Below, one piece after another: positions 3,235-64,000 of a DNA stretch of 64,000 bases. Made by a program: the position numbers and the translations under genes. Under the pieces are notes generated by a model, which did no database searches, had not been told where the DNA came from, and worked only from the letters and a program-made list of their open reading frames with translations. Source of the stretch: Asterias rubens (taxonomy: Eukaryota); NCBI RefSeq assembly GCF_902459465.1, contig NC_047079.1, positions 11,594,001-11,658,000 on the forward strand, read 5' to 3'. The first letter of the stretch is position 1, and the number at the start of each line of letters is the position of its first letter.

Positions 3235-5919
3235 CTACGTGAAGTAGTACGGTTTCTTGACATTGATGCCATGTTCACTCAGTGCAGGAGTCAAGTCTTC
3301 CATGGTCAAGGTGTATCTCTTGTCCTGTTTCAAAAAGAAAATGAAATCAACTTAGATCCTCTCTTCATAAGTTAGGTGTTTTTGAGAAATGTATTTTTGA
3401 AAAGTCTTCTTAAACCATTTCCCCCAAGTTCCTATGTTTACTGTCCACTTAAAGCACATTACCAAGTTACTTGTTATGACAGGCCTCGAATTACACAAAG
3501 GTTACAAAGGCCATGGCCGAAAATCCGTAGTGAGTACGATTATGTCCACACAGGAAGAATAATCCAAAATAGGAATACACATAATCTTAGAAGTTACCAG
3601 CAACACTTCTTATAGTCAAATTTTCTGGATATGTTTTTCCATAACCACAGTGACTTCAAGGTGAAACGTTCCTCAAAATGCATTCTACACCCGAAAGCTG
3701 CTGTGCTTCTTACCATAGACCCTTTATAACAGGCCGACTGTTTTGTATCTTTTTCACAACGTACCTTGCCGACTTTCTTTGAACTCTGACCCGATCCCCT
3801 CATCTTACAATGTTGGAGAGCATCGTTGGCAATGTCAGAGATGAACTTTTGTGCAGCTAGGGATATTACACGCACTCTGCAGATCAAAAGTTACAAAACC
3901 AAGGTCAAAGGTCTCATCATATCAATAAATATGAGGGGGGAAACAAGTAAGTAACAGTCTTATATTTAAGCTCTTTATCATTGCAGCCATCCTAGAGGTA
4001 AACAATAGAAACGCATAGGTTTGAACGCAAGGCGCACTGGATTTGCCAATGAACCTCTTGTTTACATCTAGGTGAGGGCGCCCAACACAAACGACGTCAT
4101 GAACATAAGTTCTAGAAGACACAATGGGGGGGGGGGGGTACCCCATGGAGCAACTAATCTTTCATGAATAAGAGCTTGAGTAAAGTGCACTGATCTGCTC
4201 GGCAATGACACTACCTCCTGACCAAGTGATTTCTGTTGTTATCTTTTGTTATCATTCTGATCTTTAGGGTCCTTGGGTTTCTACTTACACTCTTGGGTCT
4301 GAAGACTCAAATCCAGCTCTATTGAGATAGTATCCAGTCACTGCATCAGGTATCTAGGGATTGGAATGACAAAACTTTGTTTATTTCTTTAATCATTACA
4401 AAAGACATTTTGCAAACTCTGGGCTCTGCTCGGATGAAAAAACATTAGGTTTTGGGCATACATTTGCTGGACAAATATTTGTTGTTTCAAGCCATTGGAC
4501 ACTTTCGGAACAGAAAAAAAATTAAAAGTTCACACATTTACAAATAACTTACAAGATTTACAGAAGGTAATGGTGAAAGACAAATATCACTTCTCGATAT
4601 CGAGAATTACAGATTTATTTTAAACGCATGTCAACGTGCGGAAACAAGGGTGGGTTTTCTCGTTATTTTCTCCCGACTCCGATGACCGATTGAGCCTAAA
4701 TTTTCACAGGTTTGTTATTTTTTATATAAGTTGAGATACACGAAGTGTGGGCTTTGGGTAATACTGTTTACCGAAAGTGTCCAATGGCTTTAGGGTTTAT
4801 TTATTTATATTTTAATTTTTTAAATGTTGTAACCCCTGAACCCCTGGAGTTTTAGATTTCAATGAGCTTTTAGAAACAGCTCCTCAGCACTAGAGAAGCG
4901 CAGGATTTATTGACAATTAAAAAAAGCAAACAATCACCAACAGGCCTGGAATGTCATCTTTGACAGGGCAAAGCCATTTTGATTTTGAAAAGGGGACTTC
5001 CATTGGTAACACTATTGGTAATTACTCACAATAATTATCAGCATAAAAACTCACTTGGTAACGAGTAATGGGGAGAGATTGATAGTATAAAACATTGTGA
5101 GAAGCGGCTCCCTCTGAAGTGTTTTCCACAAAATTTGATTTCGAGACCTAAGATTTAGAATACACCAACTGTGAAGACTAGTCTTTGACAACTACCAATA
5201 GTGTCCAGTGTCTTTAAAATTTATTGGACATACAATTATTTGAAGGGGCATCAAGGCCAAGACAAGGGCAACAGAGACGTCATGGCCTCTGTGGCCTCTA
5301 TGTTATTCCAGGCCTACACCATCATCATCAGCGTCAGGCCATCTTGTCAGATGATGCCTGCAGAGATCGTCTTACAGCACGGGCGTGCCTTCGTGCACGT
5401 CGCTCCTCCTGGCTCTGGGCCCATGAATCGTGTATATGCCCGCCGCCCTGTCGGACAAGCCGCCGCCCTGTCGGACAAGCCGCCGCCCTGTCGGACAAGC
5501 CGCCGCCCTGTCGGACAAGCCGCCGCCCTGTCGGACAAACCGTCGCCAAGCAGGCCGGTCTTTGGCCAGGCATCCCCAATCAGCTGGTATGCCCGTTGCT
5601 CTTATGGTCCTTTTTACTACATCTTTGTAGCGGAGCAGAGGGCGCCCAGAGCAGAGGCCTACACCAGACAGTGGTAAATAAGTCTGTATTCAAATAGAAG
5701 TCTGAAATTTATGAATCATGAAGAAATTAAAGTGAAGTTGAAATTAGTAAACTTGGAACTCACAGTGGGTGCATAGTCTTCAATCTGATATAATAAATCT
5801 TCCAATGCATCTCCAGCCGTCTTAACCTCTCCATTTGCCAGAACTTCCTTTGGGGTCGGAGTAGATGAACCCGAGGTACCAGTGCTGGAACTGGTTCCAG
5901 AGCTTGGAGCTGTTGCCAT
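3235..5919 (-). CDS. TAF10: TFIID subunit 10 (histone-fold TAF), 4 coding exons, 140 aa
   Basis: Exons 5764-5919, 4289-4353, 3765-3876, 3235-3324, all GT-AG and phase-consistent. The product contains [56 protein letters not shown]…DKRYTLTMEDLTPALSEHGINVKKPYYFT*, the conserved TAF10 core. Confidence 0.97.
4489..4792. mobile_element. MITE family B, internally deleted copy
   Basis: agccattggacactttcgg…ccgaaagtgtccaatggct, with the same interior as 1470-1842. Confidence 0.8.
5008..5217. mobile_element. MITE family A, partial copy
   Basis: Shares its internal sequence and the right end gtgtccagtgtctttaa with 727-1110. Confidence 0.75.
5322..5654 (-). mobile_element. 5'-truncated RTE-clade LINE 3' end in TAF10 intron 1, with a 12-bp TSD
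   Basis: The minus strand translates RPLLRYKDVVKRTIRATGIPADWGCLAKDRPAWRRFVRQGG…EERRARRH, the RTE ORF2 C-terminal pattern, followed by a (TGA)n tail. It is flanked by direct repeats aggcctacacca at 5310-5321 and 5655-5666. Confidence 0.8.
5441..5540. repeat. 20-bp GC-rich tandem repeat, 5 copies, inside the RTE fragment
   Basis: cgccgccctgtcggacaagc at 5441, 5461, 5481, 5501 and 5521 (the last copy has 1 mismatch). Confidence 0.97.
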
Positions 5920-10000: not shown

Positions 10001-13000
10001 TTGTAAGATATTTGTTAAAATCTCAGTTCTACAGAGTTTGTCCTGAAACTTTTCAGTGTCTACAGGGTTTGTCTGGAAACTTTTCAGTGTCTACAGGGTT
10101 TGTCCTGAAACTTTTCAGTGTCTACAGGGTTTGTCCTGAAACTTTTCAGTGTCTACAGGGTTTGTCCTGAAACTTTTCAGTGTCTACAGGGTTTGTCCTG
10201 AAACTTTTCAGTGTCTACAGGGTTTGTCCTGAAACTTTTCAGTGTCTACAGGGTTTGTCCTGAAACTTTTCAGTGTCTACAGGGTTTGTCCGGAAACTTT
10301 TCAGTGTCTACAGGGTTTGTCCTGAAACTTTTCAGTGTCTACAGGGTTTGTCCTGAAACTTTTCAGTGTCTACAGGGTTTGTCCTGAAACTTTTCAGTGT
10401 CTACAGGGTTTGTCCTGAAACTTTTCAGTGTCTACAGGGTTTGTCCTGAAACTTTTCAGTGTCTACAGGGTTTGTTCTGAAACTTTTCAGTGTCTACAGG
10501 GTTTGTCCTGAAACTTTTCAGTGTCTACAGGGTTTGTCCTGAAACTTTTCAGTGTCTACAGGGTTTGTCCTGAAACTTCTCAGTGTCTACAGGGTTTGTC
10601 CTGAAACTTTTCAGTGTCTACAGGGTTTGTCCTGAAACTTTTCAGTGTCTACAGGGTTTGTCCTGAAACTTTTCAGTGTCTACAGGGTCAGTGTCTACAG
10701 GGTTTGTCCTGAAACTTTTCAGTGTCTACAGGGTTTGTCCTGAAACTTTTCAGTGTCTACAGGGTTTGTCCTGAAACTTCTCAGTGTCTACAGGGTTTGT
10801 CCTGAAACTTTTCAGTGTCTGGCCTGCAGCACCAGCTAGCTTGGCATTTCACTGGTTCATATTTTAGCTCTTACTCAATCTAAGCTCCATCAGCTATTCT
10901 GAAATTTGAAACAGGCAAGAAACAGGGTCAGGGTTGACTGTTGAAATTCTCTGTCTCCTTTTGTACACGGGTATTGTAGATAGTTGAGGAAGAAAAAGTT
11001 GTTTGGCGGACAAAGATGTTCGTTGGATTCAAACTAACTTTGTATTTTGTATTTCCTTTCTGAATGTTTTCTTCAGGGTATGTTTGACCAGGATAGACAT
11101 GAATATCTACTGGATGCAGCTTGTGTGCAGTTTGAACCTGATGCCAAAGATTTCATCCGGGTAGGTTTGCAAGTTTGTGTATGCAGTTAACATTTAATAT
11201 TTGAAACTATAATTATTTTTCACTATTTCTTTTTGAAACAGATCCATCAAAAACTAAGTTTATCCACAAAACCCTTCATGGAAAAACTTTATTTTATCCC
11301 CAAACTCAAGGTGGGGGAATCGCGAATAAAATGTTCATCAAGTTGTTTACAATTTTATGAGAATGTTATTGTTGAAAACCTAGATGAATTGGTCCTCAAT
11401 TTTACAGGCATGCAACTTCTGAACAGACGGATGATTTCCCCATCTTCTTTTTTGTGGTTAGTGCTCCATGAGAAACTTAAAAACACATTTCAAATATTGT
11501 GTCCGAGACAGTTTTCTTGTTTTTAAAAGTTTCATTTTCAAAAAACAGTTACCTGCTTTGAAGAGAATAGTATAGGTATGCCCAAAACGGTATGTCAGTC
11601 TCGTCTGTTTAAAGAATTGTTTTAGTAATGTTTTTGTAAGGATTAAATATTTTAAACTATAGTTATGTTTTTTGTCTGCAGTTTCATTAGATATTTGAAA
11701 CTATAATTATTATTTGTCACTATCTCAAGTTTGTTCCTTCATTTTTTGAAACAGATCCATCAAAAAACATATGACGACATAGACGCCAAAGAGAAACATA
11801 ATCTTCTCAGATCAACGCGACACTTTGGTGGACTTGCCTTCTATTTGTCGAGGAAACAACAAATTGACGGACTGTTGGTTGATATGATTAAGAGACACCT
11901 GTAAGTACATTGAGGAGTCTTGGTTCAAGACAACAGCTTAAACCATTTTATTGCATGATTCATCTCCTGAAAAAGCTTTTATTTAAAACTGTTCTATTGT
12001 TATAAGAGATGTTAAATTTGCATTGGGGATAAAGAATATTAATTTTGGTTTTGACCCATACACCGATGTGTGTTAGCACTGTATACTCAGTACTTTCCCG
12101 AGTCCTGTGAAAAATATCACAGGCATGTTACTCTGGTGGGATTCGAACCCACGACCCTTGCAATTCTAGAGCAGTGTCTTACCAACTAGACTACCGAGGT
12201 TGCCCAGCAGCTAGAGGCAGTTCGAATCCTATGTTTTGTGGCAGCGGGTAGAGCAACGATATAAGAGATGTTAAATTTGCATCGGGGATAAAGAATATTA
12301 TTGTTGTTTTGTTTTAGTTTGATACTTTTCAGATTTGTATTGTTGTTTTCGAGTGCATTTTAATGGACCCTTTTTTTTTTTTTTTTTGAGGTTGCAAATA
12401 AATTGCAATTCTATCTATTCTGTGTTTATTATAACATTAGTACATCTCAAACCCGAATTTGACCCCAGAGGGGAACATATTGATGAATCTTTTTTTTCTT
12501 TTCTTTTCCAATCCTACTTTTTCTTCTTGGATGCTTTCCACTTTTGATTTGGTTTGATTTATTTAATCATAGACCATTGTCCCGCTCTGTTTAAGTCTGT
12601 ACTTTATCTGATGTTTGAATTTGTTTTTCCCCCCAGTATTTCCGATGCAGTTGATGTGGTTCATTTGACGCATCTTATGGCACCAGACTCTCCATCAGCC
12701 GTGGAGGTTAAAAACAACAAGCTAGAAGGGATTGACGCTCTGAAGGTAAAACAACACTACAATCGGAGGGGGTGGGGGGGGCTTTTATGGCTGGTGTAAA
12801 CTCTTGCATCGAGATAAAGAATATTATTTTGGTGTTGCCCTTAAACTGATATCTGGTAAAAGCTGTATACTCGGTGCTTCCGGAGTTTTGATATGTGATT
12901 CGAACCCACAGCCTTTGCAATTCTAGAGCATATGTAGTAAACCATTGTAAGCATGGGCAGTGAGTACTGCAGCAATTTGGGTTTGACATTTTACATTCGA

Positions 13001-15795: not shown

Positions 15796-18700
15796 TCAAA
15801 CGTCTAGATCATCATCAGGGTCTTCCTCATCCATATCGTCAGCCTCGTCCGGTTCGTAAAATATCTTCCCCGATCCCTCCGTGCTGCCGATTTTTATTGT
15901 ACGCCTGAGTAAAACAATGACAAAACAAAAAGTTATCAAATAATAAACCCTTTTGTTCAACACAAAAAAAATAAAAAAGGTATGTAAAAAATAGTTCACC
16001 CTTAGGTTTTGTAAAGATATCATTACACACAAAAATAATTTGATAGGGCCCCAAGTCCAGGGGCATGGAGGTGATTGCCTCTGTCAAGCCTGGTTGACTT
16101 TTTCATACTTTAGTCTGTGAACATTTTAGTGCGTGTTAACATATTTGAGAGAGAATACCAATAGACAATACCCATGAAATATGTAATTGCACATAGCGCT
16201 CGCGCACTAACGTTTTGGTTGGCGAAATGAGGGAACATCGCGTGTGCGTGACGCAGACGCGATTGCACGTCTGCTTAGTGCACAACTCTATGGTGTTTGC
16301 CAACCACCAGGGTCTGTACGCATGCGTGAATATAATTAGCATGTTTCATGGGAAGGGTCCATTGTATTGCCAGCTTGGCCCCGAGGTGATACCTCATTGC
16401 AGAAAGACCCTCTCAAGAAATTAATAATCATACATTATGTAAAACTCACTGAGAGATATTACCTTTCTTGTACTTTGGTGTATGGCAAGACGACTTTGTC
16501 TTTCGCTAGTCTTTCCGAGTCTCTCAATGTCAAGTTAAAGGTTAGGTTCGCTGTCGGGTCAGGCTGTGGGAAAACAAAGTCAGAAATGAAAAAGCATTTA
16601 ACCTAAGCAATTTATCAAGCGGTATTTTCTGTTGAACAAGTGTGAATTATTTGCCCCGTGTAGGAATGCTACTCCAAAATCATCATTTGTTACTAACTTG
16701 CTCAATATTTGCGTTCCGTGTGCACAAAACATGCCTGGACAGTATAAATGCAAAATGGTTCCTTTAACAACATGTAACAACTTTTACCATTTGGCACATT
16801 TTGTTTTATCTAGAAGGCACAGAGTTAGTGCTATAATAATGTCTAGTTGTTGTTGATGTTGTTGTTGTTGTTTGTGTTTTGTTCCTTACCTGTGGATCAG
16901 ACTCCACTTCAAGGTTTGCTGTTCCTTTGTCTGGAAACACAAACAGCTGGTAATCATGATCAACACTGAAACCTTCTCTCTGTGTACAAAAACAGGATAA
17001 CAATTACTTGATTATAATAAAAGAGGGTTCGAGCGGGGCTTAGGCTCCAGCTGCCATTTAGAAGCCATGTACTGAAAGCACATGTTTAAAGGAACACGTT
17101 GCCTTGGATCGGTCAAGTTGTTCTTTGAAAAGCGTTTGTAACTGTTTGTTATAAAATGCATATGATTAGAAAGATATTTTAAAAGTAGAATACAATGATC
17201 CACACAAGTATCGCTCGAAATTACGTGGTTTTCCTTTAACCTCGTCGACTAACATGGTCGGCCATTTATGGGAGTCAAAAATTTGACTCCCATAAATGGC
17301 CGACCGTGTTAGTTCTCACAGTAAAAGGAAAACCACGCAATTTCGATGCAAACTTGTGTGGATCATTGTATTCTACTTTTAAAACATCTTTCCAAACATA
17401 TGCATTTTTTTTTTTAACGGCTACAAACGCTTTTTATAGACCAACTCGTCCGATCCAAGGCAACGTGTTCCTTTAAGCAGAAGAAAGGATTTCAATAATA
17501 GGGCCATTGTTTGATCATTTGACCCACTGGTCAAAGATTTATTAAATACACCATACTGTTAAGAGGGTAGTGCATTCTGCTCTACAGCCAGGCTCCTAGT
17601 GGATGAGACTGTGAAGGGGGTAACCCTGTTTCTGCCCTGCCTATGAGTAGGTGGCAGCCTGTCCCTGGTGACAGTTGATTTGGGCTGTAAACCCAAATCG
17701 GTGAAGTGTAGCCCTTATTTTGTAGTGGCTGTCCTGTCCGTGGCCTTGTGAGGTTAGGCGATCTCTAATTAATGTGTTTTTTAAACTGTAGGAAAAGGGC
17801 AGTGATACACCTGTAACTGCAATACTTACTATTCGTATAACTTTCCCAGATTTCCTTCTATGTACTAACTCACAGAGTGCCGTGGGTTCTTCTTGAATAG
17901 GAGCTATGGACCGGTATGGTTCTAAGTATAGAACTGACGACGCTAGGTGACAGATGGCGCTTGTGGCTGATACATCATGAACGTCTTGATGTAGGAGACA
18001 TATCACTTGTGAAATCTCAGGACCTTAAAATAATCAAAATGAACATTCCGATAAACTCTAATACTGATTAAAAGTCACAAAAATATAGTGTACTCTTCTA
18101 CATCCATTGTTCAGCTTGATTCTGGGCAAAAACATTTCCTTTATTAACCATCCTACTCTTTGTGCCATTTTCCTGTGTGCCGCTGTGTGATGCATACACC
18201 ACTTGTATACCATTGCAAGTTGGACTAGTTTTTATATTCAAAACTAGTGGATTGAATGGTCAGACAGTAGGAGGGTTGACTGTGTAGTATGAAGATACAT
18301 TCACCACATGATATCGTATAGCGGGCAGGCAGTGTATCTATCATTCAAAACCTCAGTGGGTAATATTGATTGGTCAGACAGTAGGAGGGTTGACTGTGTA
18401 GTATGAAGATGCATTCACCACATGGTATCGTATAGCGGGCAGGCAGTGTATCTATCATTCAAAACCTCAGTGGGTAATATTGATTGGTCAGACAGTAGGA
18501 GGGTTCACTGTGTAGTACTGTGTAGTTGATTCACATCAACTAATACTAATCTGCAAAACAAAGCTCGGGGGACGGAGACAATTGCCTTTGTTCCTTTGTG
18601 ATGTATACCTAGCTTTCCACAAAAAAAACTTTAAAATCATGTACTTAACAGCTTTTAAACTGCCAAAGGAAAAAGGGTAGTTATGATGATACATGTACAT

Positions 18701-38600: not shown

Positions 38601-41600
38601 GAATTGCGAATAGGCTACCACCGCCTGTAGTGGGGATATATCAGAGATGATCATAATGAGATGTTGCAAAGTAAAGAAAAGGATAATCATCCAGGAAAAT
38701 TTCAATCAGAGAGCTTTCTTTATATTCCATTTACTTAAGCTTGGTGGTCTGGTTAGCCGGTAGTGGTATCTTTCCTTGTCTTCTACCTCTAGGACCCCCA
38801 ATTCAAATCACACCGGGGTACTATGTGGAGTGGGTTTTCAGTCCATACCCAACTGCATGGGTTTTCCCTACAATAATTCTCTGGGGGTTTTCCTCCCACA
38901 TCTAAAACTGAAACTTCCTTCATTGTCTTCTCTCTATTTGGTTCTTGGTAAGTACAGTGATTAAGTTTGCTTTTCGGAGAATCCTTGACTTCACAACCAA
39001 AATAAATAAAGTTTAATGAAATTAAATTTCTGATCAGCAAAAGATCTTTTGCGGATTTATGTATCAAAATAAATGTTGATACTGATGATTATCATCTATA
39101 ATTCAAATAAATCAGTGCTGTTTCACAAATAGGAATTCAGGCCTTGACCTTCACTCTTGAAGGGGCATGGCAATTTTCCTCGGGTAAGAGGAATAACTAT
39201 GAGGAAAATGTAAACTTGTATTGGAACTTTGTAAAGGACACCACAACAAAAGCACAGGGCACCATGGCAATCGCTGTGGGTGCGAAGGGTTATTTTGTCG
39301 ATGTTGGTGCCAAGGGGTTATTTCGAGGGCTGTGAATTCAGTTTTAATTTCGCTTGCGACTCTACCAATAGAGAACAGCATGGGTACACAGGCTGAGTTA
39401 TGTCTCTCTTTAGTTCGGGGTGTCTGCATTGAGGCTCGCTGTTCTGGTAGCAAGTGATACTTCAACGCTTCAATCAGGAAATCTTTACACTCGGGGCTGC
39501 CTCGGATAATCGGTTCCGTCTCAACATTGTTGACTAAAAAGTCTCGGGTGAGGAGAGGTAGACGAACTAGCTCCATCAACTGTGGAGGAAATATTTCGAA
39601 AAAGAGGAATATAATTTGGTGTGATAAGGCCCTATTGGTGTGTTACATAAACTATGATTTCAAAGCGGGTGCTGCAATGATTTGAGTAGGATTTGAAACT
39701 TTGCACGGTTGAAGAATACTTAAGAAAGCTTTGCTGTAACACATAATATCTCTTTTTAGTGGTGTTGGTTATGAAAAGAACTGGTGGTTAACGACTCATC
39801 ATTTTGATCAGTATGCTCTGATCGTCTTCAGGAGAATGCTGAAGACAATATTTGGTTTTTGCCTGTCGCATCGGTGGTGTAAGGTAAAAAACCAAACCGA
39901 ATTCTTTATCCCCGATGCAAAATTCACATCCCTTTTAAAACTTAATTTGGTTACCTTGTCAACATATTTTAGTCGGGGTTGTAGATCGGTTCTCACCCAC
40001 ATCACTACTGCGTTGAAAACGTCTTCCTCTGACGTTATGTTTAACTGCTCACTGGAGATGAGTTGGGCAACCTGTGAGAATATATGAAAACAAATCTTAG
40101 ATTTTGTGTTTAAGGTGATCTAAAGACCTTATGCATCGTCTTGTATGTATTTTCTTATTCTTAATATTTATGTGTACAGTGTAGGACAAAGAATCTCACG
40201 ATGTTTCATAAATGTTACCAATGAATGAATGAATGAATGCGCATGACGTCATTTGAGTAGGGCGCCCTCGCACAATTCAACAAGAAGGTTGCTTATTGGC
40301 TTAACCTTGCCTCCCAAACAGAAAAATTATGTTCTTTGCCAACTGCGTTCATTGTAGCTCTTGATAAGTAGGAACAGAGCAAATAATTTTGCAATTTATT
40401 GAAAGACTAGAAAACCAAGTTGTTAGGACTTCAGGGAATTTTAATAACAGGGGTTGATTTCACAAAGAACTTAGGACTAGTCCTAGGACTCTTTAGGAGT
40501 TATCAACAAACTTAGGGCTAGTCCTAAGTTAGGACGAGTTTAGGACATGTTACTCGTTCTAACTCAAGATAAGACTAATAGCTCTTTGTAAAATCCTCCC
40601 TTGCTTTGGTTTAAGTTGGTTGTCTTTTGGTGATTAACATGTAGATGATGACAGCTTTTTACCTCATCAACAGGTAGATGAAGATACTCCTCTGTATTCA
40701 CAACATGATTAAAATTCTGCAGCGAGTAGAGAAGTGATGATTGCTCCAAGTCGTAGCATCCGTGCATATCGGCAAAGCGTCGGATCCCGAGGCAGTTTGA
40801 CGGATCAAGCTGACCGAGGAGGAATTTACAGCAGGCATCGCGGACGCTGTGAAGCTGTAGGACACTGGCTGCTGGAAGGAGAGCCTAAATAAAACAGAAA
40901 GTACAACAGAGTAGGTAAGATTGCTTTCTAACAAATGTCTCCTGAGTAAAAGTAACCAGGAAACAGGATTTATGCAAGCAGTTGTGTAGCTGGGGAGAAG
41001 GGGCTGGCCCCGGGGCGCGCGCCGCCTTAGAGGGCATCGCGGACGCTGTGAAACTGGAGGACACTGGCTGCTAGAAGGAGAGAGCCTAGATTAAACAAAA
41101 TGTCTCCTCAGGTAAAATAAGCAGGAACCAGACTTTAAACATGCAGTCAGTGGTGCAGATTGGGGGTCTGGGTGCCGCCTTAGAGGGCACCAAAATGTCC
41201 AATGTCAGTTTTACGTTCTTCAAGGATATCTGCCTTTGGGATACACCTTGAGCAGCAAGTGACATCATTCGAGTGTGGCGCCATCGGCCAGAGGTAAAAC
41301 AAGTTCGCTCTTTGGCCCATCCATGTGCTGCGCGTACAAAGAGGTGCACACTTCTGTTTCATCATCATTCGACAGGGGATGACATCAATGAAAACAAAAA
41401 AGTACAGGGGATGAAAATGTTCCTATTTGAAAATAGGAACATTTCAAGATGAACAATGGCAAAGACCTTGAAAATCTCAGAATGATTAAGTTTTTAATTT
41501 CTAACCTGTACATTCTTCTCTCCAATGTTAATTTCTGCCGTGTACGCAAACTGAACGAGTTGTTCTACTGCACTTGCTTGGATGTCATGCAGGCAAACCT

Positions 41601-50100: not shown

Positions 50101-53100
50101 ATGTAATGAAAACACAGTTTTACATGCTAAAATAATTTTCATCTCATGATCACTGAGGCGAAAATTATTTTCATCACATTGTTTTACTTATTTCTAAAAT
50201 AATTCAGGCATATAATATTTTAAAGGAAGCTTTCTACCATCATTATCTTCAAGCTGTGTAAGTTTAGTGTAAATCTGTGGACATTGTGTTTTAAGTACAT
50301 AGACCCTTTAAATGATCATCTTATCTTTGAGAAGCAATCGCCATAAAAGCAAACTCATTTCTGTCAATCATACTGGTGATGTTCAATAACAACCAAATTT
50401 AAAGTGATTTGTTTCATTTGTTGAGACTTTGTTCATCACATAATTGTTCAGTCAGTCTTGACAGACTTTATTCCCATTCTGCTCAGGGGGCACAGCAGTT
50501 TTCCTCTAGTAAGGGACACTTCTATACTATCACCCACAGCACCCACAGCAATTGCCTTGGTGTCCTGTGCTTTTGCTGTGGTTCCAATACAAATTTACAT
50601 TTTCCTCAGAGAGGTGCCCCTTTCTAGAGGAAATTGCTTTGCCCCTTCAAGTTCAATACCCGCTATTCCTTTGTATGTTGCAATGCACGGCAAATTTCTC
50701 TTGGGTTACTTGTGTCCCTGAGCAAGACACTTAACTTGATTTGCTTCTCTCCAGCCAGGGGTAAATGGGTACCTGTAAGGGCAGAGATAGTTCTTTTGTT
50801 TGATTTAGCTTCGTAGCGCATATTTGTTGCACAAGCTATATATACTCCAGAGGGAGCTGAGATGGTTTTAAGGAATGAATTAAATGGCCCAGTGACTAGG
50901 TGTAATAATGTTGGAAGAGCTTTGAGACGCCCTTCAAGTGTGCAAAGCACGATATAAAAACCTATTATTATTCTTCCTGAGCTCCTTTATGGATCAGATC
51001 TTGAAGGAGAGATGTATCAACTGAGCCACGTCTTAACGGAACAGAAATCCATCATGAGCCAAATGCTAGAAATGTCCATTGGAAAGAAAGGTAAGTTTCT
51101 TAATGATTTATAAACAGATTAAATTAAATAAGGAAAACAGTCTGGTAAAATTTTAAATAATTTTGGGTTGAACAAAGAGAATAGACCGATCCAGTAGGCT
51201 CAGCCCACGATGCACGTGTGAGCATGAACACGTGGGGCTCTCCAATGCCTTTCTGCACAACTCTGCGGCGCGCGCCAAGCAGACGCGCACGCATGTCGGA
51301 CCTTAGTGTCGGACCTTCATTGTGTTGTGATTGGTCATTACACAATGGGGCGGGGCTTAATGGATCGGTCAGTTGACTAGAGCTTGACAACAAAATGTGT
51401 CCTCTGGCACGCTAACTTTTTTTTATGCTTTGAAAAGCACTGATATACAGCGCTTATGGCCTAACATCACATATTAGTGTATGGCAGAAAACCAAAATAA
51501 TATTATTTATCCCTTGTGAACTTATTACATTTATTAAACAATGAGTTTTATTGATTATGACTTCTCGATTATTCTGTTATTTTCTCGATTCTCTTGTTAT
51601 TTTCCAGAAGCTTCAGTAAGAAATAAAGACTTGCCGCAGAACAAAGATGACCAGAAGAGAACAATAGCCTCACTCCTGGATCGAGTAGAAGGATGCTCGG
51701 TCAGTAATCAAAAGAACTCCTAATTTATTAACTTTTGAATGTGGATTAGGTTAAAATAAAGGCAAACAAGTTCCAAAACAGTCTGGTGCCTTTCCAGCAC
51801 TGATGCATTTCTTACTGTATTTACCTGTCTGTTTTTTGCAGAGGATAACCGAGGTACCAGGTCGATACATTGTCCATGATGGCGACCTAGTGGAGTTAGA
51901 CACGGATACGTTCTCCGAGGTTCAACGAGTTCATGCTTACCTGCTCAACGATAGCTTAGTTATTACAACATTCGTTCCCAACAGGTAGAATAAACTTCAG
52001 GCTTTGAAATAACCCACAGCATTTGCTGTAGTGCCCTGTGCTTTTTCTGTGGTGCCCTCTGCAAGGTTCCAGTACAAACTTACATTTTTGTCTCATAGAG
52101 GTACCCCTTATCAGAGGGAAATTACTATGTAGTTAATTTTTTACTGACTTGGGGGAAAGACAAATTTGCCAACCTCTACCAGCTGTTTCAAGTTTACACT
52201 CCATCAAGGAATCTTTGATCAAAATCCATGCTTCTCCTCAATGAACCCAAGTCTCGACACTCATGGGGTGACAGGTCTTTTTCTTCAGCTGCGCCACGCA
52301 TCTGGAACTCTCTACCACTTAGTCTTAGATCTTGACTTTGTACCAAAAAATTCAAATCTCTTCTCAAAACTTATCTTATGTCGCAGGTTTTCAAGAATTA
52401 ATTTTGTTGTGTCTGTTTTTCTTTGTTTTTGTTTTTTGGTTTACTGCGCCTTGAACACCCAGCAGGGTGGATACGTGCGCATTACAAGTCTTATTATTAT
52501 TATTGATCTATTAAGCCCAATTTTGGTGGTCTCCCTATTGGTCAATGTCTTTGTTCAAAGTGCCAGTAAGAAGTCATGCAATGAGGTTTTAAACACTTGT
52601 TTTGCAGACGGGGACCAGTGAGGTACAAGTACCAGGCATTATATGAGCTGGACAGCCTTGCTGTTGTTAACGTCCGAGATGTTGGTCGTAAGTCACTTTT
52701 TGGAATTTCCATCATAACATAATCGATTAAAGCAAAACAACTACCCTTAGCATACGCCTTTGAATGTCTCAAATTTTGTTTGTGATTTGTAAAGTGTAAA
52801 CATTTCAAAACAATTAAGATTGAAGTAACTCACAGAGCTTTTGTAGTCTTCATGAAGAGTAAATACGATCGACAGAAATCATGTATAATAAAAACATAAT
52901 AGTAATAATATGTGGTATCTTTTATTTATAACTTGTTTTTCTTTTTGACTTCGTAGCTGTGAAAAATGCTTTCAAGATACTGATGTTTCCTGATCAGAGG
53001 ATTTACAGAGCGGACAACTCCAAGACAAAGGTACAGAGAGTAAACCTGGTTTTTATGATAAGAATAGTACTAAGTTTTTATACATGTATAATAGTGCTTT

Positions 53101-56100: not shown

Positions 56101-59100
56101 AGCAACTCAGGTATGTGAGTAACCTCGAGCCCTCAGAGGTTTTCTCATCGAGCCTCGGCCTGTAGGCAGATGTTTTATGCTTACGGAGCGGCCATTGGCA
56201 GAACTTCTATTTTATTAATATTGCTTGCCCGTGTCCCAGGTCCACTGTAGATTCTGTCCCCCATATGGGAAATTAACATGGGCTAGAGGAGGACGATTCA
56301 AAAGAGGGCGCTATCAGAAGAAGTTTGTACACAGTTTGCCATATTGGGGGGACAGAACCTGCGGGGGATAGAATCTCCTGCCACACCATAAGCAAAGTAA
56401 AACGCACGCTAGCTTTCCGCCCGTTCTTGTTGACAAACGAGTGATGCTACAATGCACATACTCACTAAATGAAATCATACTGTTTATGAAATGGGCTTTA
56501 CTTTTGATTGTTTTCTCTTAAAGTAAGCACAAATATTTGCTTAGCGGTAATACAGCTTTATGAAATTGTCCCCAGGTTAATTTCTTACACAATTCAAAAC
56601 TAACATTAGGTGTTACCAGTTGCAACAATGTAAATTCTATGGAATTTTGGCTGGTACCCAGTTTCTTTTAAGCAAGATTTTTCTGTGCTTAGCAAAAACA
56701 ATTCTGTGCTGAGCAAGTTTTTATGCTTACGAGACCCAGATTACTTGGTGATTCTTCAGAGATAATAAAACTTCTATGGATTCCTTTTTCTCAATTTAAA
56801 ACTTTCTTGATTTGTCTGTTCCTGGTAGGCGTGTGATTTATTCCTGAAGAACCGTAGCGCATCCATTAAACAATCTCTTCGTCAGTTGAGGATAGAGGGT
56901 GCTACAAGCATGTACATCACAAAGCTTTGCGGTGTTTTCTTTAACAACATCATTGAGACGGGCAAAGAGTTCCGCATCACATTTTCTGAAAATCAAGGAT
57001 GTTTCTCAGGTAGTTATTTAACCAAACCTTAATCTTACCCTAATGTTAACCATACCTTATTGTGATGATGTTCCCTCTCAAATTTGCCAAAATTACAAGC
57101 TACTGGGACAAGTCTATTGTCTCATTTGCCCTTGGTAACAGAAAGTGGATAATGACAAATACTCGAGTGACTGGTAAAAGTCTATTGCCTCATTTTCCTG
57201 TGTATCAAGAAAATGTGTTGTTACAAATGCTTGAACAATTAGTAATAAGTCTACAGTGTATATCCTCATTTTCTTGGCCAGCCAATGCTCAATCCAGGCT
57301 AACCCAGGAATAAAACAAATTAAAAATCTTTGACTTGTTCCTTTTGTGCAGTAGTGATGATGAATATTGATTTAACTTTTTAGTTGTTTCTGATTATATT
57401 TCTTTATTCAGGGTCCGTTGATAAAATAACTACTATGATTCGGTTTAGTATAATATTATTTCAAACTTTGTTTGCAGCGTTTGTCGTTTGGAGCAAAGCT
57501 GAGTTGAAAACCTTCGCTAATCACTTCTCGCGTCAAGCCCTCGCTAAGAAGACAAGTGTAGCCATCGTAGCAGAGTGTGTTGGAATCGCTCGGACATACT
57601 GCCAGCAACTCTCAGTGATTGGTCTGGAGCTACTGTTTGCTATGAACACATTATTATTGAGAGGAATACGGGAGGCAATGCAGTACAACAAAGAACAGCT
57701 TATTGAAGCTTCCAGACATCGAAATGTGGTAAGTTGCAGGCGTGGGATTTCATCTTTGAGAGGGCAAGGCCATTTCAGGCCTTATGCTTCGTTTTTTCCT
57801 TAATAGTAAAAGGCACCCTACTACTGGAGTATTTCAAGGGCACCAAGGCAAGGCCGTTTCAGGCCTTATGCTTTGTTTTTTCACCCTACTAGAGCATTTC
57901 AAGGGCACCAAGGCAACCACCTTCGTTGCCTCTGTGAGGTACCAGGCCTGCCAATGGTATACCTAAAGGGCACTTCCATTTGTTTGAAGGGCACCACGGT
58001 CAAGAAAAGGGCAAGGAAGGCCATGGCCTCCTTTGCCCGTTTGTATTCCCTGGAAAGAAACAGTTTAAATTGACCTTTTCATTTTCGTTTTTCAATATCA
58101 TAGTGTCGGTTTCTACTCCTCTCCTAGATTGAACCCGGCTGTACAGAGTATTGTTTAGTATTTTAGAAGTCTCATGAGGTTCTCCTTATTGTTTGTTTTC
58201 TTTAAAGGATGAACGATGGTACCCACTGAATCTGAAGAATCCCAACGCAGCTAATAACCTCATCCAAGAAATGTTCCAACTTGGCTTTGAAGATTTCAAC
58301 ACTCTGGTTTATGGTACGTCATCTTATTGAACTTTTACCCATTGAGTCATTCTTATAATCATTGCTGCAATATTAGTGTTCATGAATGATAGGGGTATGT
58401 GGTGAATTAGTGACATCAATTCTACAAGACACCTATTGGCTCCCTGCTTAAGCCCACATTCATAGAGTTGTCTAATATATTGCTTAACTATTGTCTGCTG
58501 AACAGAAATGAGCAGGATACAAAGGACACAAAAGATGCAATACCGAACATACTTTGTTTTGCATGTTTGATCTTTGTTGTTTATTTTTATAGTTATCAAT
58601 TTGATTTAATGTATTTTTTTCTTACAGACAGTTGCTTTGTAAGTCTTTCCAGCAGTAATGTTGCTTTTACCAAGGTGCTTCTGTCATTTCTACTCGATGC
58701 ACTCAAGCTTTATGTTCCAGAGGTAAGTCTTCAATGAAACTCCTTGATTACACAAAACTGGGGGTACTTTGACTGGGCAACAGGTGCCTGATCATACCTA
58801 GCAATATCCAGCACCCTCTTATCTATAGTTGTTCCCAGATGTAACATGGGCCACTGATGATACAATGTGCGTGTTGTATTAGGGCGAAGGGGATGGCATA
58901 CCCAAACTGGGCATACTTGGACTGGGTAACTAGGTGCCTGATCATACCTAGCAATATCCAGCACCCTCTTATCTACAGTTGTACCCAGATGTAACATGGG
59001 CCACTGATGATACAAGGGGCGTGTTGTATTAGGGTGAAGGGGATGGTATACCCAAACTGGGCATACTTGGACTGGGTAACTAGGTGCCTGATCATACCCA

Positions 59101-60689
59101 GCAATAGCTAACATTATCTTATCTACAGTTGTACCCAGAATTAATCTGGAACACTGAGGGTGCAATGGGAGCATTGTATTAAAGTATACTCAAACTGGGT
59201 GTAGTTGGACTGGGTAACTAGGTGCCTGATCCTAACCAGCAATATCCAGCACCCTCTTGTCTAAAGTTGTACCCAGATTTAATATTGACCCTTGAGGATG
59301 CAATGGGAGTTTTGTACTAGGGTGGGGTTGTATACCCAAACTGGGCGTACTTAGACTGGGTTACTAATACTAGGTGCCTGATCATACCCAACACCCAGAT
59401 CTAATATGGACCATTGAGAATGCAATGGGAGTGTTGTACTAGGGTACTATATACCCAAACTGGGCGTACTTAGACTGGGTAAGTAGGTGCCTGATCATAC
59501 CCAATACCCTCTTGTCTACAGTTGTACCCAGATCTAATCTGGATCACTGAGGATGCAATGCGAGTGTTGTATTAAAGTATACTCAAACTGGGCGTAGTTG
59601 GACTGTGCCTGATCATACCTTACACCCTCTTATCCACAGTTGTACCCATATCTAATATGGACCATTTAGAATGAACTAGGGTATTATACACCCAAACTGG
59701 GCGTACTTAGACTGGGTAACTAGGTGCCTGATCATACCCAATACCCTCTCATCTACAGTTGTACCCAGATCTAATCTGGACCATCAAGGATGTAATGGAG
59801 AGTCATGTTCACCTAATGGAGACAGCAGTCATGTCGGACAGGTTTGCCGACGAGCGACCATTCATCATGACGAATATTGATTACCTCTTCACTGTCCTGC
59901 TTCCTCATGTTGAGAAAAAGATCAAGGTAAAAATAATCCCCTCAAGTAAACTTGTTCTTGTGATACGACATCTGCTCTAGCAATGAAAAGGTTGTGTGTT
60001 AGAATCCCACCCGAGTGATTTCCCTGTGGACTTTTGTTCACAAAACTCAGGATAGTGCTGAGTGTACTGTGCTGCAAAATTTACATCTATTCAGCTGGTT
60101 CTGATTTCTTTCCAGTCTGTGTCAAATGTTTTGTCAATACTTTCCAAAATGTGTACATCTTTTCTGTTATTATTAGGTTTGGTTAAAGAGACTTTATTAA
60201 TGTATTGCATTAATCATTTTAAATGTGAAGTTTACAAACTGTCAGTAATAAATATATTAAGTTAATCAGTAGGGAAAACTGATCTGTAATTTTCTCAAAC
60301 TGTGTTTCTTCAACTCAAAAATATTAAACTCTCTTCAAGAAACAGCCGTCGATTTCACAAAGAGTCATGACTCGTCTTATCTCGAGTTAGGACAAGTAAC
60401 TCCTAGTCCTAACTTAGGATTAATCTTAAGGTCTGCATGCTAATGTGCATGGTTGGGACTCGTCCTAAGTCCTAAGATTAGTCTTAAGTTAGGAAGAGTT
60501 TTGTGAAATCGACTATTTCAAATAAGCAAATGTATTTCTTTAGCTGATCAATTTGTATTTTTATAAATTTTTAATCTTTGGAATCCTTTACAGGGTGTTG
60601 CAGATCGGAGCCTGAAAGAATTGAAGGACTTCCGCAATCGCCACCGGCAAATCACCCGAAAGGTTCAAAATCTTGGTGCACTAATATAA
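47188..60689 (+). CDS. EXOC8: Exocyst complex component 8 (Exo84), 17 coding exons, 682 aa
   Basis: Exons 47188-47242, 49757-49912, 50998-51090, 51608-51699, 51842-51984, 52608-52687, 52957-53030, 53264-53372, 54769-54921, 55470-55521, 55966-56110, 56829-57009, 57478-57728, 58208-58313, 58628-58722, 59759-59926, 60594-60689 (2049 nt, in frame). Motifs: LKKNVYRNYTQFIETAKEISYLEGEMYQLSH, a PH-like region, WLIELPEDLDMCIAQRNFEEA. Confidence 0.95.
47763..47897. mobile_element. ~135-bp hairpin MITE (family D), opposite orientation
   Basis: ggaaaagtttccgtatggcgccaccactttttca…tgaaaaagtggtggcgccatacggaaagttatcc. Confidence 0.85.
48981..49402 (+). mobile_element. Full-length tRNA-derived SINE with a CORE-like domain and (TTA)n tail
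   Basis: A box tggccgagcggttaag and B box ggttcgaatccc, then gtgtccttaagcaagacac, ending gcgcgttataaat…(tta)n. Confidence 0.85.
52206..52502 (+). mobile_element. L2/CR1-type LINE 3' fragment
   Basis: Translates …LLLNEPKSR…WGDRSFSSAAPRIWNSLPLSLRS*…KFKSLLKTYL, the L2/CR1 ORF2 C-terminal motif with an internal stop. Ends gtgcgcattacaagtc(tta)n. Confidence 0.8.
58755..59800 (+). repeat. Diverged tandem array of about 110-150-bp units in EXOC8 intron 15; each unit is a copy of the intron 3' end plus the start of exon 16
   Basis: Eight units contain actggg…taggtgcctgatcatacc…cctcttatctacag|ttgtacccagat. The last unit is the real acceptor of exon 16 (59759). Confidence 0.93.
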
Positions 60690-62320
60690 CGAGGTATAGA
60701 AGGGCTTTATTTGTGACTATCCAAATTATTTTGTTTCTTTGTTTTTGTTTTTATAACTCCACTTGCTTATTCTATTATGTTAACATATTGCTGATTTTAT
60801 TTTCAGATTCTATATTCTTGAAATGTTTTTGTATGTTTACTTTTTGTTTTAAGTGCAATATTGATTTTTGTAAAAAAAATTAATCTCATATTTGATGAAC
60901 CACGGGAGCTAGCACATGATGTGATGTGATTTTAGTTTCTTTCACAAAAATGAAAAAGTTTTAATTTTGTTTTCAAAAATATCAAGAAAACTTCATTGAA
61001 TATGTTAACTTGGATTAAAATCCCAGTGTTTTTGTTGTTGTAGGTTTTTCAAGTGGGCTTTGGATTGTTGTCTAAAGATTCAAACTTGTAATAATTTAGT
61101 TATTGAAGCTCAAAGAGAAACCAGTCATGTTCTAGAGTCTGGTGCTTATGATGTAATGACAAATGTCATAATGATTGGCACTATGGCTTCTGAGTACAAT
61201 ACAAAGATGGCATCTCTCGTTTGAACTGGCACTAATCCGCTGAATGTTAGTAAAAGTAGAAAGCTGTATAACTATTGTTGACTGACCAAAGATTATTTAT
61301 TCAGAAAACATCAGTTAAATATTATATCCAAAACATGGACACTTCTTCCCTCAGACCCCCCCCCCCCCAAATGAACATTGACAACTTTATACACTTATAA
61401 ATGACACTCGGATAGATCCCAATTTCATAAAGCCTGTAAGCAGAAAAACTTGTTTAGCACCTAAAAGTATTGCTCAACAGAAACAGGTTACCAGCCAAAA
61501 TTACATTTAGTGTACACTGTTGTGACTGGTTGTGACTGGTGCCCACTCAATATTAGCTTAGCAAAGAAATTTATCAAGAAGTAGTTTCTGCTTAACAGCT
61601 TTATGAAATTAGTCCTTAATCCTTGTCATTTGATTGGAGGATTTAAGGTCACATGATAATTTTAAAATCTGTCGCGTCAGTTGAAAATTGTCAGATTTCA
61701 GCATATGCTTATTTGGTGTGTACATCCAGGCTATTTTAAGCCAAATACGTAATTTTGAAAATTTTAAACTTTATTTATTTTTATAGATTCATCTTCCAAT
61801 CAGATTATATAACAAATAGTGAACATTTATTTGCGCAATAATATTTTATTCATTGAAAGATGGATTGTTCCATTCAACTCTACCTCACCTTGTTGAATGG
61901 AACATTCCATGTTTCAATCTATGAAAATATTCTCACCCATTGCACTCATAAATATTCATTATTTACATCTCATGGTTTTTAACCTTGTTTGGCCGGTTGT
62001 TTGCACACCTCAAGGCAAACTGTAATTAGTTCAAGCCGTTAGAAGGTCCACAATTTTATTTATGCGGGGAGTTTGGTCACCGGTCAGAAGAGTTACTAGA
62101 ATACGAAGTCGGCATTAGCTTCAGAAACAAAGATATGATCAGTATCATATTAATATAATCTGCGAAGAAATACATAAAAATAAAACAATTATAGACTGCA
62201 GACCCTGGATCTATGTGTTTATTTCTGTTTTAGACCAACAATTCAAGTTATTCCAGAACTATTGAATAGCTATCGTATAACTTTTACAACCATGATTCCG
62301 TTTATGGGAAATTACAGTGT

Positions 62321-63317: not shown

Positions 63318-64000
63318 CTAAAAGTCAGGACCAGTCTTGCTTTCAAGAGGCAGGGCAGACGGTTCCTTCAACTCAAAGTCAGGACCAGTCTTGCTTTCAA
63401 GTGGCAGGGTAGTCGGTTCCTTCAACTCAAAGTCAGGACCAGTCTTGCTTTCAAGTGGCAGGGCAGTCGGTTCCTTCAACTCAAAGTCAGGACCAGTCTT
63501 GCTTTCAAGTGGCAGGGCAGACGGTTCCTTCAACTCAAAGTCAGGACCAGTCTTGCTTTCAAGTGGCAGGGCAGTCGGTTCCTTCAAATCAAAGTCAGGA
63601 CCAGTCTTGCTTTCAAGTGGCAGGGCAGACGGTTCCTTCAACTCAAAGTCAGGACCAGTCTTGCTTTCAAGTGGCAGGGCAGTCGGTTCCTTCAACTCAA
63701 AGTCAGGACCGGTCTTGCTTTCAAGTGGCAGTGCAGTCGGTTCCTTCAACTCAAAGTCAGGACCAGTCTTGCTTTCAAGTGGCAGGGCAGTCGGTTCCTT
63801 CAACTCAAAGTCAGGACCAGTCTTGCTTTCAAGTGGCAGGGCAGTCGGTTCCTTCAACTCAAAGTCAGGACCAGTCTTGCTTTCAAGTGGCAGGGCAGAC
63901 GGTTCCTTCAGCTCAAAGTCAGGACCGGTCTTGCTTTCAAGTGGCAGGGCAGTCGGTTCCTTCAGCTCAAAGTCAGGACCAGTCTTGCTTTCAAGAGGCA
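63318..64000 (-). CDS. Putative terminal coding exon made of 18-aa tandem repeats (KEPTALPLESKTGPDFEL)n, running off the window edge
   Basis: The frame is open from base 64000 to TAG at 63318-63320. Unit variants are synonymous or conservative in this frame, with no indels. No homology was recognised. Confidence 0.45.
   Translation of the reverse strand, partial: PLESKTGPDFELKEPTALPLESKTGPDFELKEPSALPLESKTGPDFELKEPTALPLESKTGPDFELKEPTALPLESKTGPDFELKEPTALPLESKTGPDFELKEPTALPLESKTGPDFELKEPSALPLESKTGPDFDLKEPTALPLESKTGPDFELKEPSALPLESKTGPDFELKEPTALPLESKTGPDFELKEPTTLPLESKTGPDFELKEPSALPLESKTGPDF
63321..64000. repeat. 54-bp tandem repeat, about 12.5 copies
   Basis: Unit aaagtcaggaccagtcttgctttcaagtggcagggcagtcggttccttcaactc, starting at 63321, 63375 and so on. 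Confidence 0.97.

Follow-up and report, generated by a model that had tools for sequence, protein, structure and literature searches.

Intron 15 of EXOC8 in the sea star Asterias rubens consists almost entirely of tandem copies of its own 3' boundary, and the question it raises is what, if anything, a row of splice acceptors placed ahead of the authentic one does for the gene. We studied this intron within a 64,000-nt stretch of the A. rubens genome (contig NC_047079.1, positions 11,594,001 to 11,658,000 of the forward strand; hereafter the window), and all coordinates are positions in that whole stretch. The initial annotation had read the copies as cloned splice acceptors forming a bank of candidate poison exons, with a recursive-splicing substrate, intron gain in progress or neutral slippage expansion as further options. 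The first part of this reading stood, in that the copies are cloned 3' splice-site modules whose source is the real boundary of intron 15 and exon 16. Poison exons, recursive splicing and intron gain proved to be either unsupported or refuted, and neutral slippage expansion, offered only as a fallback, turned out to be the best-supported reading. We conclude, with a probability of roughly three in four (0.77), that the array is a minisatellite of the 'mirage' type known from amphioxus (Ebner et al. 2010, PMC3087553), that is, tolerated, near-neutral DNA that lengthened an ancestral intron.

The Pfam domains Exo84_C and PH_EXO84 on the exons mark the gene as Exo84/EXOC8, and protein searches (with exon 13, then at full length) returned echinoderm EXOC8, the nearest being that of A. 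rubens, at 92% over all high-scoring segment pairs and 96-100% within exons. Exact spliced alignment of the RefSeq protein gave a phase-0 junction 58722|59759 and placed the start of the following exon at 60594; together with Pfam this upheld both the gene name and the intron number, the latter when a 12-residue cassette exon is left out of the numbering. That cassette (HKTDIYGFLLSEA...) lies between 53377 and 54753 and also occurs in an Acanthaster isoform, and the EXOC8 RefSeq isoforms further differ by one Glu, a NAGNAG-type choice at the exon-4 acceptor (51605-51610). All five RefSeq protein isoforms of the two Asterias species studied, A. rubens and A. amurensis, read ...LKLYVPE|LYPDLIWTIKDVM across the junction in question, which supports its use independently if indirectly; the cassette and the one-residue choice, both elsewhere in EXOC8, are their sole differences. 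The exons around it, all on the forward strand as are the units described below, are exon 15 (58628-58722, 95 nt, phase-0 end ...CCAGAG), which matches RefSeq protein P0189 exactly when spliced and is joined by split reads at both ends (58313>58628 and 58722>59759), exon 16 (59759-59926, 168 nt), a segment conserved across Asteroidea, and the coding part of the last exon, exon 17 (60594-60692), reached by the junction 59926>60594.

The intron itself (58723-59758, 1036 nt) comprises 32 unique bases, the only non-repeated ones, that begin with the donor GAG|GTAAGT (58723-58754), followed by eight tandem units of 109-150 nt each. Tandem Repeats Finder reported a head-to-tail array of minisatellite-size units at 58755-59784, with periods of 150, 138 and 118, and anchoring on AAACTGGG set the unit borders at 58755, 58904, 59054, 59192, 59338, 59457, 59585 and 59694. 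Pairwise identity among the eight units is 78-93%. The units align on one side with the final 65 nt of the intron and on the other with 41 nt or more of exon 16, whose first ~41-60 nt are the template for the exon-like part, and the terminal unit 8 is the real junction, made of the authentic intron end and the start of exon 16. The annotated count of seven upstream copies and a real eighth was thus confirmed, with every coordinate holding. Sensitive blastn found no further unit copies in the 64-kb window, and no Rfam family matched the array on either strand.

The seven upstream units differ in how much of the module they retain. A branch-site-like block, the pyrimidine tract and the AG are intact in six of them, and exon starts of the form AG|TTGT(A/T)CCCA fall at 58829, 58979, 59129, 59267, 59522 and 59640 (hereafter decoys), in addition to the real one at 59759. 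The first three decoys belong to unit 1 (58755-58903, 149 nt, acceptor TAG|), unit 2 (58904-59053, 150 nt, acceptor CAG|) and unit 3 (59054-59191, 138 nt), and the fourth, weakened to AAG|, to unit 4 (59192-59337, 146 nt). Unit 5 (59338-59456, 119 nt) lacks an acceptor through a 37-nt deletion that removed its pyrimidine tract, AG and first exon-like bases, while unit 6 (59457-59584, 128 nt) and unit 7 (59585-59693, 109 nt) hold the last two decoys. In the intron part of unit 8 (59694-59758) a branch-site-like CTGAT stands ~27 nt before the AG and is followed by a pyrimidine tract and the authentic CAG|. Motif matching and the 37-nt deletion therefore agree with the six decoys and the one lost copy described in the initial annotation.

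Every decoy opens onto an early in-frame stop, as translation confirmed. Five read LFPDVTWATDDTMCVLY, LYPDVTWATDDTRGVLY, LYPELIWNTEGAMGALY, LYPDLILTLEDAMGVLY and LYPDLIWITEDAMRVLY, each ending in a stop at codon 18, and the decoy at 59640 reads LYPYLIWTI with its stop at codon 10; the stops lie at 58880 (TAG, unit 1), 59030 (unit 2), 59180 (TAA, unit 3), 59318 (unit 4), 59573 (TAA, unit 6) and 59667 (TAG, unit 7). Judging from its sequence (GTA[T/C]TA[G/A]), the shared codon-18 stop is a single inherited junction and not a set of independent stops. All these stops precede the 59926|60594 junction by over 50 nt and so are eligible for nonsense-mediated decay (NMD), as had been proposed, assuming that the exon-junction rule applies in sea stars. 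Donor-like TGG|GTAACT motifs were found where annotated, at 58926 (unit 2), 59076 (unit 3), 59214 (unit 4) and 59716 (unit 8), as was a TGG|GTAAGT at 59479, the only one of its kind, in unit 6; GTTACT replaces GTAACT in unit 5, and a 16-nt deletion has taken the GT donor-like site from unit 7. The 'micro-introns' of 43-53 nt that would separate such pseudo-exons are indeed below any real EXOC8 intron, the shortest of which measures 142 nt (51700-51841).

Outgroups indicate where the units came from. The start of exon 16, LYPDL(I/V)WTI(K/R)DVM, is conserved in the sea stars Patiria and Acanthaster and recognizable in the sea cucumber Apostichopus, and a repeat-free intron occupies the same position in Acanthaster (161 nt), Patiria (406 nt) and Apostichopus (330 nt), with no unit matches at these outgroup loci. 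Because Patiria and Acanthaster keep this exon start and yet have no array, the exon is the source of the copies. Array-free species share both the exon and the intron position, so that these are ancestral, and it was from the boundary between exon and intron that the array was copied. Subtracting the array copies from the A. rubens intron leaves ~97 nt. A dispersed repeat or transposon as the source of the unit was rejected on the lack of another copy in the window, the Rfam null, the lack of an outgroup match and the identity of the exon-like part as conserved coding sequence.

The same array occurs in A. amurensis, where an independent chromosome-level assembly (record L005) shows 11 units in an intron of 1667 nt. 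The comparison of unit number across orthologous introns, proposed as a check in the initial annotation, thus gave 8 vs. 11 units in the two Asterias species and none in Patiria, Acanthaster and Apostichopus. In a maximum-likelihood tree of all 19 units (R1-R8 from A. rubens, A1-A11 from A. amurensis) the pairs R4/A7, R5/A8, R6/A9, R7/A10 and R8/A11 were orthologous with 90-100% support (99/97 for R5/A8 and 100/97 for R7/A10), R1 paired more weakly with A1 (84/51), and R2 grouped with A2-A6, a clade that represents an expansion confined to A. amurensis. Since six unit pairs are orthologous, the unit tree places the array before the split of the two species. The acceptor-removing deletion of R5 is likewise older than the split, because A8 carries it too, and the GTAAGT of R6 is common to A9. 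Paralogous units diverge by up to ~20% and orthologous ones by ~4%, and therefore the first duplications are several times older than the species split. In A. amurensis the branch-site-like block, pyrimidine tract and AG are intact in 8 of 10 decoys. A3 has lost its AG, and A7, whose acceptor is CAG where its ortholog in unit 4 has AAG, bears a 149-bp insertion with ~23-bp terminal inverted repeats in its pyrimidine-tract region (L005 15804-15952), resembling a miniature inverted-repeat transposable element (MITE) and not found in A. rubens. A10 runs for 31 codons before a stop at codon 32, as against codon 10 in R7. Weak relatives of the A7 insertion, at 74-80% identity, lie at 40237-40300 and 4033-4113 of the window. 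A search for extra haplotypes through the exon-13 open reading frame returned only a 1.2-kb metagenome contig that stops short of the array.

These data also bear on whether the array is real. Assemblies err on tandem repeats, and the window is identical, over 2200 nt, to the single A. rubens reference, both of which would favor a collapsed or inflated repeat. We nonetheless give an assembly artefact next to no chance: pieces from X19, an independent DNA run, cover most of the array in reference order, each with 0-3 mismatches; between 0.2 and 0.59 of the array 31-mers occur in each of over 15 DNA runs; and orthologous units stand in matching order in the A. amurensis assembly, which was made independently. 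The concern had been raised with the initial annotation, and all three lines speak against it.

To follow splicing we used two raw RNA runs (X15 and X16), a contig run (X3) and the DNA run X19, with reads placed on the A. rubens sequence at a 92% likeness threshold. In X15 the authentic junction 58722>59759 was crossed by 11 reads, each with a different start point, and in X16 by one read; X3 has a transcript contig of 1795 nt (depth 39.5) that contains it. All 12 of the split reads from donor 58722 among the joints listed thus go to 59759; the joints listed for X15, X16 and X3 (12 junction reads, from RNA of A. amurensis type) included none to any decoy acceptor, and in neither raw RNA run did a single read fall in any of the ten bins of the array. 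Neighboring junctions had 5 reads (exon 14-exon 15) and 6 and 2 reads (exon 16-exon 17), and therefore 58722>59759 represents ordinary constitutive splicing.

The array was represented in X3 by two low-depth contigs, 59148-59308 and 59331-59479 (depths 3.1 and 4.1). These we considered as a pseudo-exon ending at the GTAAGT and rejected as such: they follow the genomic sequence without a break past decoy acceptor 59267 and past the GT sites at 59214 and 59360, so that they are unspliced through 59267, and their ends coincide with X19 DNA contig ends, which are assembly-graph breaks. They look like pre-mRNA or DNA carry-over. The 59148-59308 contig is ~94% identical to the A. rubens R3-R4 junction and has no counterpart at 90% or more in the A. 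amurensis reference, although the rest of X3 carries A. amurensis alleles; this hints at structural polymorphism of the array.

It is against this RNA record that an unselected leak through the decoys has to be judged. Under this explanation some 1-10% of transcripts would use a decoy acceptor, giving an exon-16 extension or a pseudo-exon with a stop, and would be cleared by NMD, so that copy number slightly lowers EXOC8 output without any regulation. The modules are near-identical to the real one, two of them score at least as well (59522 and 59129, see below), their stops come long before the 59926|60594 junction, and the RNA-labelled run X3 does contain array contigs, at depths of 3-4 vs. 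39.5 for the mRNA. None of the listed split reads lies on a decoy, however, raw reads on the array are zero, and the X3 contigs, colinear and with X19-matching ends, have the look of pre-mRNA or DNA carry-over. We regard such a leak as unlikely, if still the foremost competitor of a tolerated minisatellite. A stronger form, in which the decoys lose a few per cent of EXOC8 pre-mRNA to NMD or act as a sink for U2AF/U2 and slow intron removal, is a long shot; if true, the dosage of an exocyst subunit would be set by the number of units, which is 8 in A. rubens and 11 in A. amurensis and may also vary within a species.

We then asked what distinguishes the acceptor that is used. Sites were ranked with a position weight matrix (PWM) built from 44 real splice sites of the EXOC8 orthologs of three sea stars, a crude matrix with non-independent training that serves for ranking only and is noisiest at acceptor positions -20 to -15. 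By this measure the real acceptor at 59759 is weak for EXOC8 (1.7, 9th percentile of real sites), and the decoys at 59129 (3.1, 11th percentile) and 59522 (3.8, 18th percentile) score as high or higher; acceptor strength therefore does not explain the choice of site. The donors present a different picture. The donor of intron 15 scores 11.0 (98th percentile of real donors) and that of exon 16, AAG|GTAAAA at 59927, scores 9.4 (91st percentile), as against 1.2 (2nd percentile) for the GTAACT sites and 3.6 (11th percentile) for the GTAAGT at 59479, and all GT sites in the array fall short of the lower quartile of the 44 real donors. Within the 'micro-introns' the sole branch-site-like motif (CTGAT) lies ~16 nt from the GT. 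A branch site at such a distance from the donor is too near for splicing, given the geometry of the spliceosome, and consecutive cassettes therefore cannot splice to each other. Exon definition would be the most economical mechanism by which the last acceptor is chosen.

The same sites bear on two further alternatives. A run of good 3' splice sites inside one intron could invite recursive splicing, that is, stepwise removal of the intron through the decoys; regenerating a donor in this way needs AG|GT, and every decoy is AG|TTGT, so that ...CCAGAG joined to TTGTACCC makes no GT and no AG|GT ratchet site exists at any decoy. The sequence thus refutes this proposal of the initial annotation, and a 1-kb intron is in any case too short to need stepwise removal, leaving it practically out of the question. 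Alternatively a new exon or intron might be forming, with a central unit's exon-like part recruited and the intron split, along the lines of the mirage-to-intron model put forward for amphioxus globins (PMC3087553). In favor of this, the GTAAGT of unit 6 has been kept in both Asterias species. Yet all exon-like parts have in-frame stops, the unit upstream of the GTAAGT at 59479 has no acceptor and the one before that only a weak AAG, and such a junction is absent from the RNA joints listed and from the RefSeq models. We find it scarcely credible; what was annotated as intron gain in progress is better put as the growth of an existing ancestral intron.

Were the decoys under selection as a poison-exon bank, a copy-number-tunable or regulated switch that sets EXOC8 dosage through alternative splicing coupled to NMD (AS-NMD), their 3' splice sites should stand out by conservation. 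Between orthologous decoys, substitutions amounted to 7 of 180 positions (3.9%) in the upstream part, 4 of 71 (5.6%) in the 3' splice-site region (-25 to +3) and 11 of 248 (4.4%) in the exon-like part and tail, so that the splice sites show no extra conservation (4/71 vs. 18/428 elsewhere in the orthologous units). For the rest of the locus, blastn pieces between A. rubens and A. amurensis are 84-95% identical, exons and gaps included. The authentic acceptor region (59735-59758 vs. L005 16468-16492) has 3 substitutions and a 3-nt indel in -25 to +3, more than any orthologous decoy, and the A. amurensis authentic acceptor has a longer T-rich tract (…CTTTATTTCAACAG). That most decoys retain their 3' splice-site modules, and that at least six units have persisted from before the A. 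rubens/A. amurensis split, could be taken to favor selection, but by our estimate the keeping of AG in ~6 of 7 units is what ~10% per-site drift would leave. The stops, too, derive from one ancestral junction and differ in R7/A10 (codon 10 vs. 32); units bear AG loss, deletion and a transposon insertion; outgroup sea stars manage without the array; the donor-like sites are weak (2nd percentile for GTAACT) and the micro-introns too short; and inclusion was not seen in the mapped RNA, where the listed joints include no decoy junction. A selected switch, the headline of the initial annotation, is accordingly very improbable.

Several points weigh against a purely neutral array. Site strength by itself does not account for the decoys being silent (6 of 7 are intact in A. 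rubens and 8 of 10 in A. amurensis, and two score at least as high as the real site), and the exon-definition step that would account for it is one that we infer. The RNA is shallow, 0 of 12 reads permitting decoy use of up to ~22% at 95% confidence; at 10 of 13 variant sites its alleles are those of A. amurensis, which makes this a cross-species test, and reads of diverged decoys may fall below the 92% likeness threshold. NMD would in addition mask decoy isoforms at steady state. Finally, the exon-like parts of the decoys are 68-86% identical to the real unit, vs. 85-98% for the intron-like parts, and this lower identity could reflect selection that silences the decoys, for instance their exon enhancers, and not pure drift. 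The simplest reading of the asymmetry is that concerted evolution homogenizes the neutral intron parts, that of the last unit included, while selection would protect the real exon and the decoys would carry common early derived changes.

On the preferred explanation, a tolerated mirage-type minisatellite, the array would have begun in an ancestor of Asterias with the tandem duplication of a ~130-150 bp segment that took in the 3' two-thirds of an intron then only ~100-160 nt long and ran on into exon 16 for its first ~40-60 nt, and would later have been amplified by unequal exchange or slippage. In A. rubens the intron would thereby have grown about ten-fold, to 1036 nt, and in A. amurensis it would have reached 1667 nt. 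One intact boundary would have been left beside the remaining exon at each duplication, and the coding sequence would therefore never have been interrupted. The upstream copies are drifting relics, with AG loss, deletions, a transposon insertion and a species-dependent number. The last acceptor would win by exon definition, being paired with a real exon and a strong donor 168 nt downstream where the decoys face weak GT sites, and any rare use of a decoy would meet a stop far upstream of the last exon junction, whereupon NMD probably clears the transcript.

The closest precedents are the amphioxus mirage minisatellites of Adh3 and the globins BflGb6 and BflGb9, whose units span an intron/exon boundary (Ebner et al. 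2010, PMC3087553). Those of BflGb6 are 150-160 bp, consist of the 3' intron end plus the 5' part of the next exon and are 81-100% alike; many keep AG signals, splicing is normal, copy number depends on haplotype, and clusters undergo concerted evolution inside with boundary units exempt (PMC3087553). The starfish array resembles them in its tandem, boundary-spanning, AG-keeping units and normal splicing, and in its concerted evolution and unstable unit number, although the instability is here seen across species (8 vs. 11 units, with the species-specific A2-A6 clade). It differs in lying in another phylum, the echinoderms, and in a different gene, and in that its units are older and more diverged (78-93%), at least six being orthologous between two species, whereas somatic instability is reported for amphioxus Adh3. 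The EXOC8 array thus adds a further example to a known repeat type and does not reveal a regulatory mechanism.

A human counterpart on the donor side is the 37-bp variable number tandem repeat (VNTR) in intron 7 of F7, whose terminal unit spans the exon/intron boundary and whose 5' pseudo-sites are silent (Borensztajn et al. 2006, PMC1557585). These pseudo-sites are functional and yet silent beside the authentic site, and 5'-to-3' scanning was shown with 50 minigene constructs (PMC1557585). In both cases near-identical pseudo-sites are silent, for the starfish in the available RNA, and the exon-adjacent site wins. However, F7 clones the donor side in 37-bp units, and the starfish clones the acceptor side in units of 109-150 nt that bring the pyrimidine tract and branch site with them. 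If the site reached first in the 5'-to-3' direction were always taken, the choice would fall on the wrong (first) acceptor in the starfish, whose case is known from sequence and RNA reads. Besides the mirage and F7 papers, we found no human acceptor-side VNTR in the literature. The Rogers model, in which introns arise or lengthen when splice signals are duplicated in tandem, was re-enacted by Hellsten et al. 2011 (PMC3265369); intragenic tandem duplication, redundant signals, a surplus copy spliced out and an unchanged protein are common to both. Theirs was a coding AGGT duplication that made a new intron, whereas the starfish lengthened an ancestral intron by a duplication iterated 7-10 times.

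Poison exons, known from splicing regulators and other genes, owe their definition to inclusion that has been observed and is as a rule regulated, and their conservation is often high. The starfish decoys resemble AS-NMD exons in their splice-site-like signals and in-frame NMD-eligible stops and differ from them in lacking seen inclusion (with decoy use bounded here at ~22%) and excess conservation, and in their weak donors.

Minisatellites make up roughly 4-5% of the 64-kb window, in five arrays. One is a 31-bp minisatellite of ~26 copies, 98% alike, at 10023-10820 in an intron of the upstream gene; its units end ...CTACAG|GGTTTGTCC, in loose likeness to the acceptor ...TCTTCAG|GGTATGTTTGACC at 11076, ~250 nt downstream, and the array may be boundary-derived and no longer abut its exon. 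Further tandem arrays are a 54-mer of at least 12.6 copies (63321-64000, running off the window end), a 114-mer of 2.3 copies (18251-18517) and a 20-mer of 5.4 copies (5440-5547). The introns flanking the EXOC8 array probably hold repeats of another sort. In intron 16, RNA and DNA pile up at 60262-60543, with hundreds to thousands of reads vs. ~5 on flanking exons and with contigs tens of thousands deep. Joints between opposite strands are numerous there, and loose ends occur at 60348 and 60513, as would be expected of an interspersed element of inverted-repeat structure that is present in very many copies and transcribed from many loci. In intron 14, 58476-58569 has ~30-fold raw-read depth, a contig depth of 1775 in RNA runs and several polymorphic sites, and is probably another dispersed repeat.

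The EXOC8 locus is a natural example of ten-fold intron growth by iterated duplication of a 3' boundary with the protein left untouched, and of a spliceosome able to bypass six to eight near-identical acceptor modules. The two species, with their different unit numbers, would make a ready minigene system for setting an exon-adjacent acceptor against earlier-transcribed ones, and the locus would be a useful test case because first-come-first-served choice predicts the first decoy. It extends 'mirage' minisatellites from amphioxus to echinoderms and provides an acceptor-side counterpart of the human F7 VNTR.

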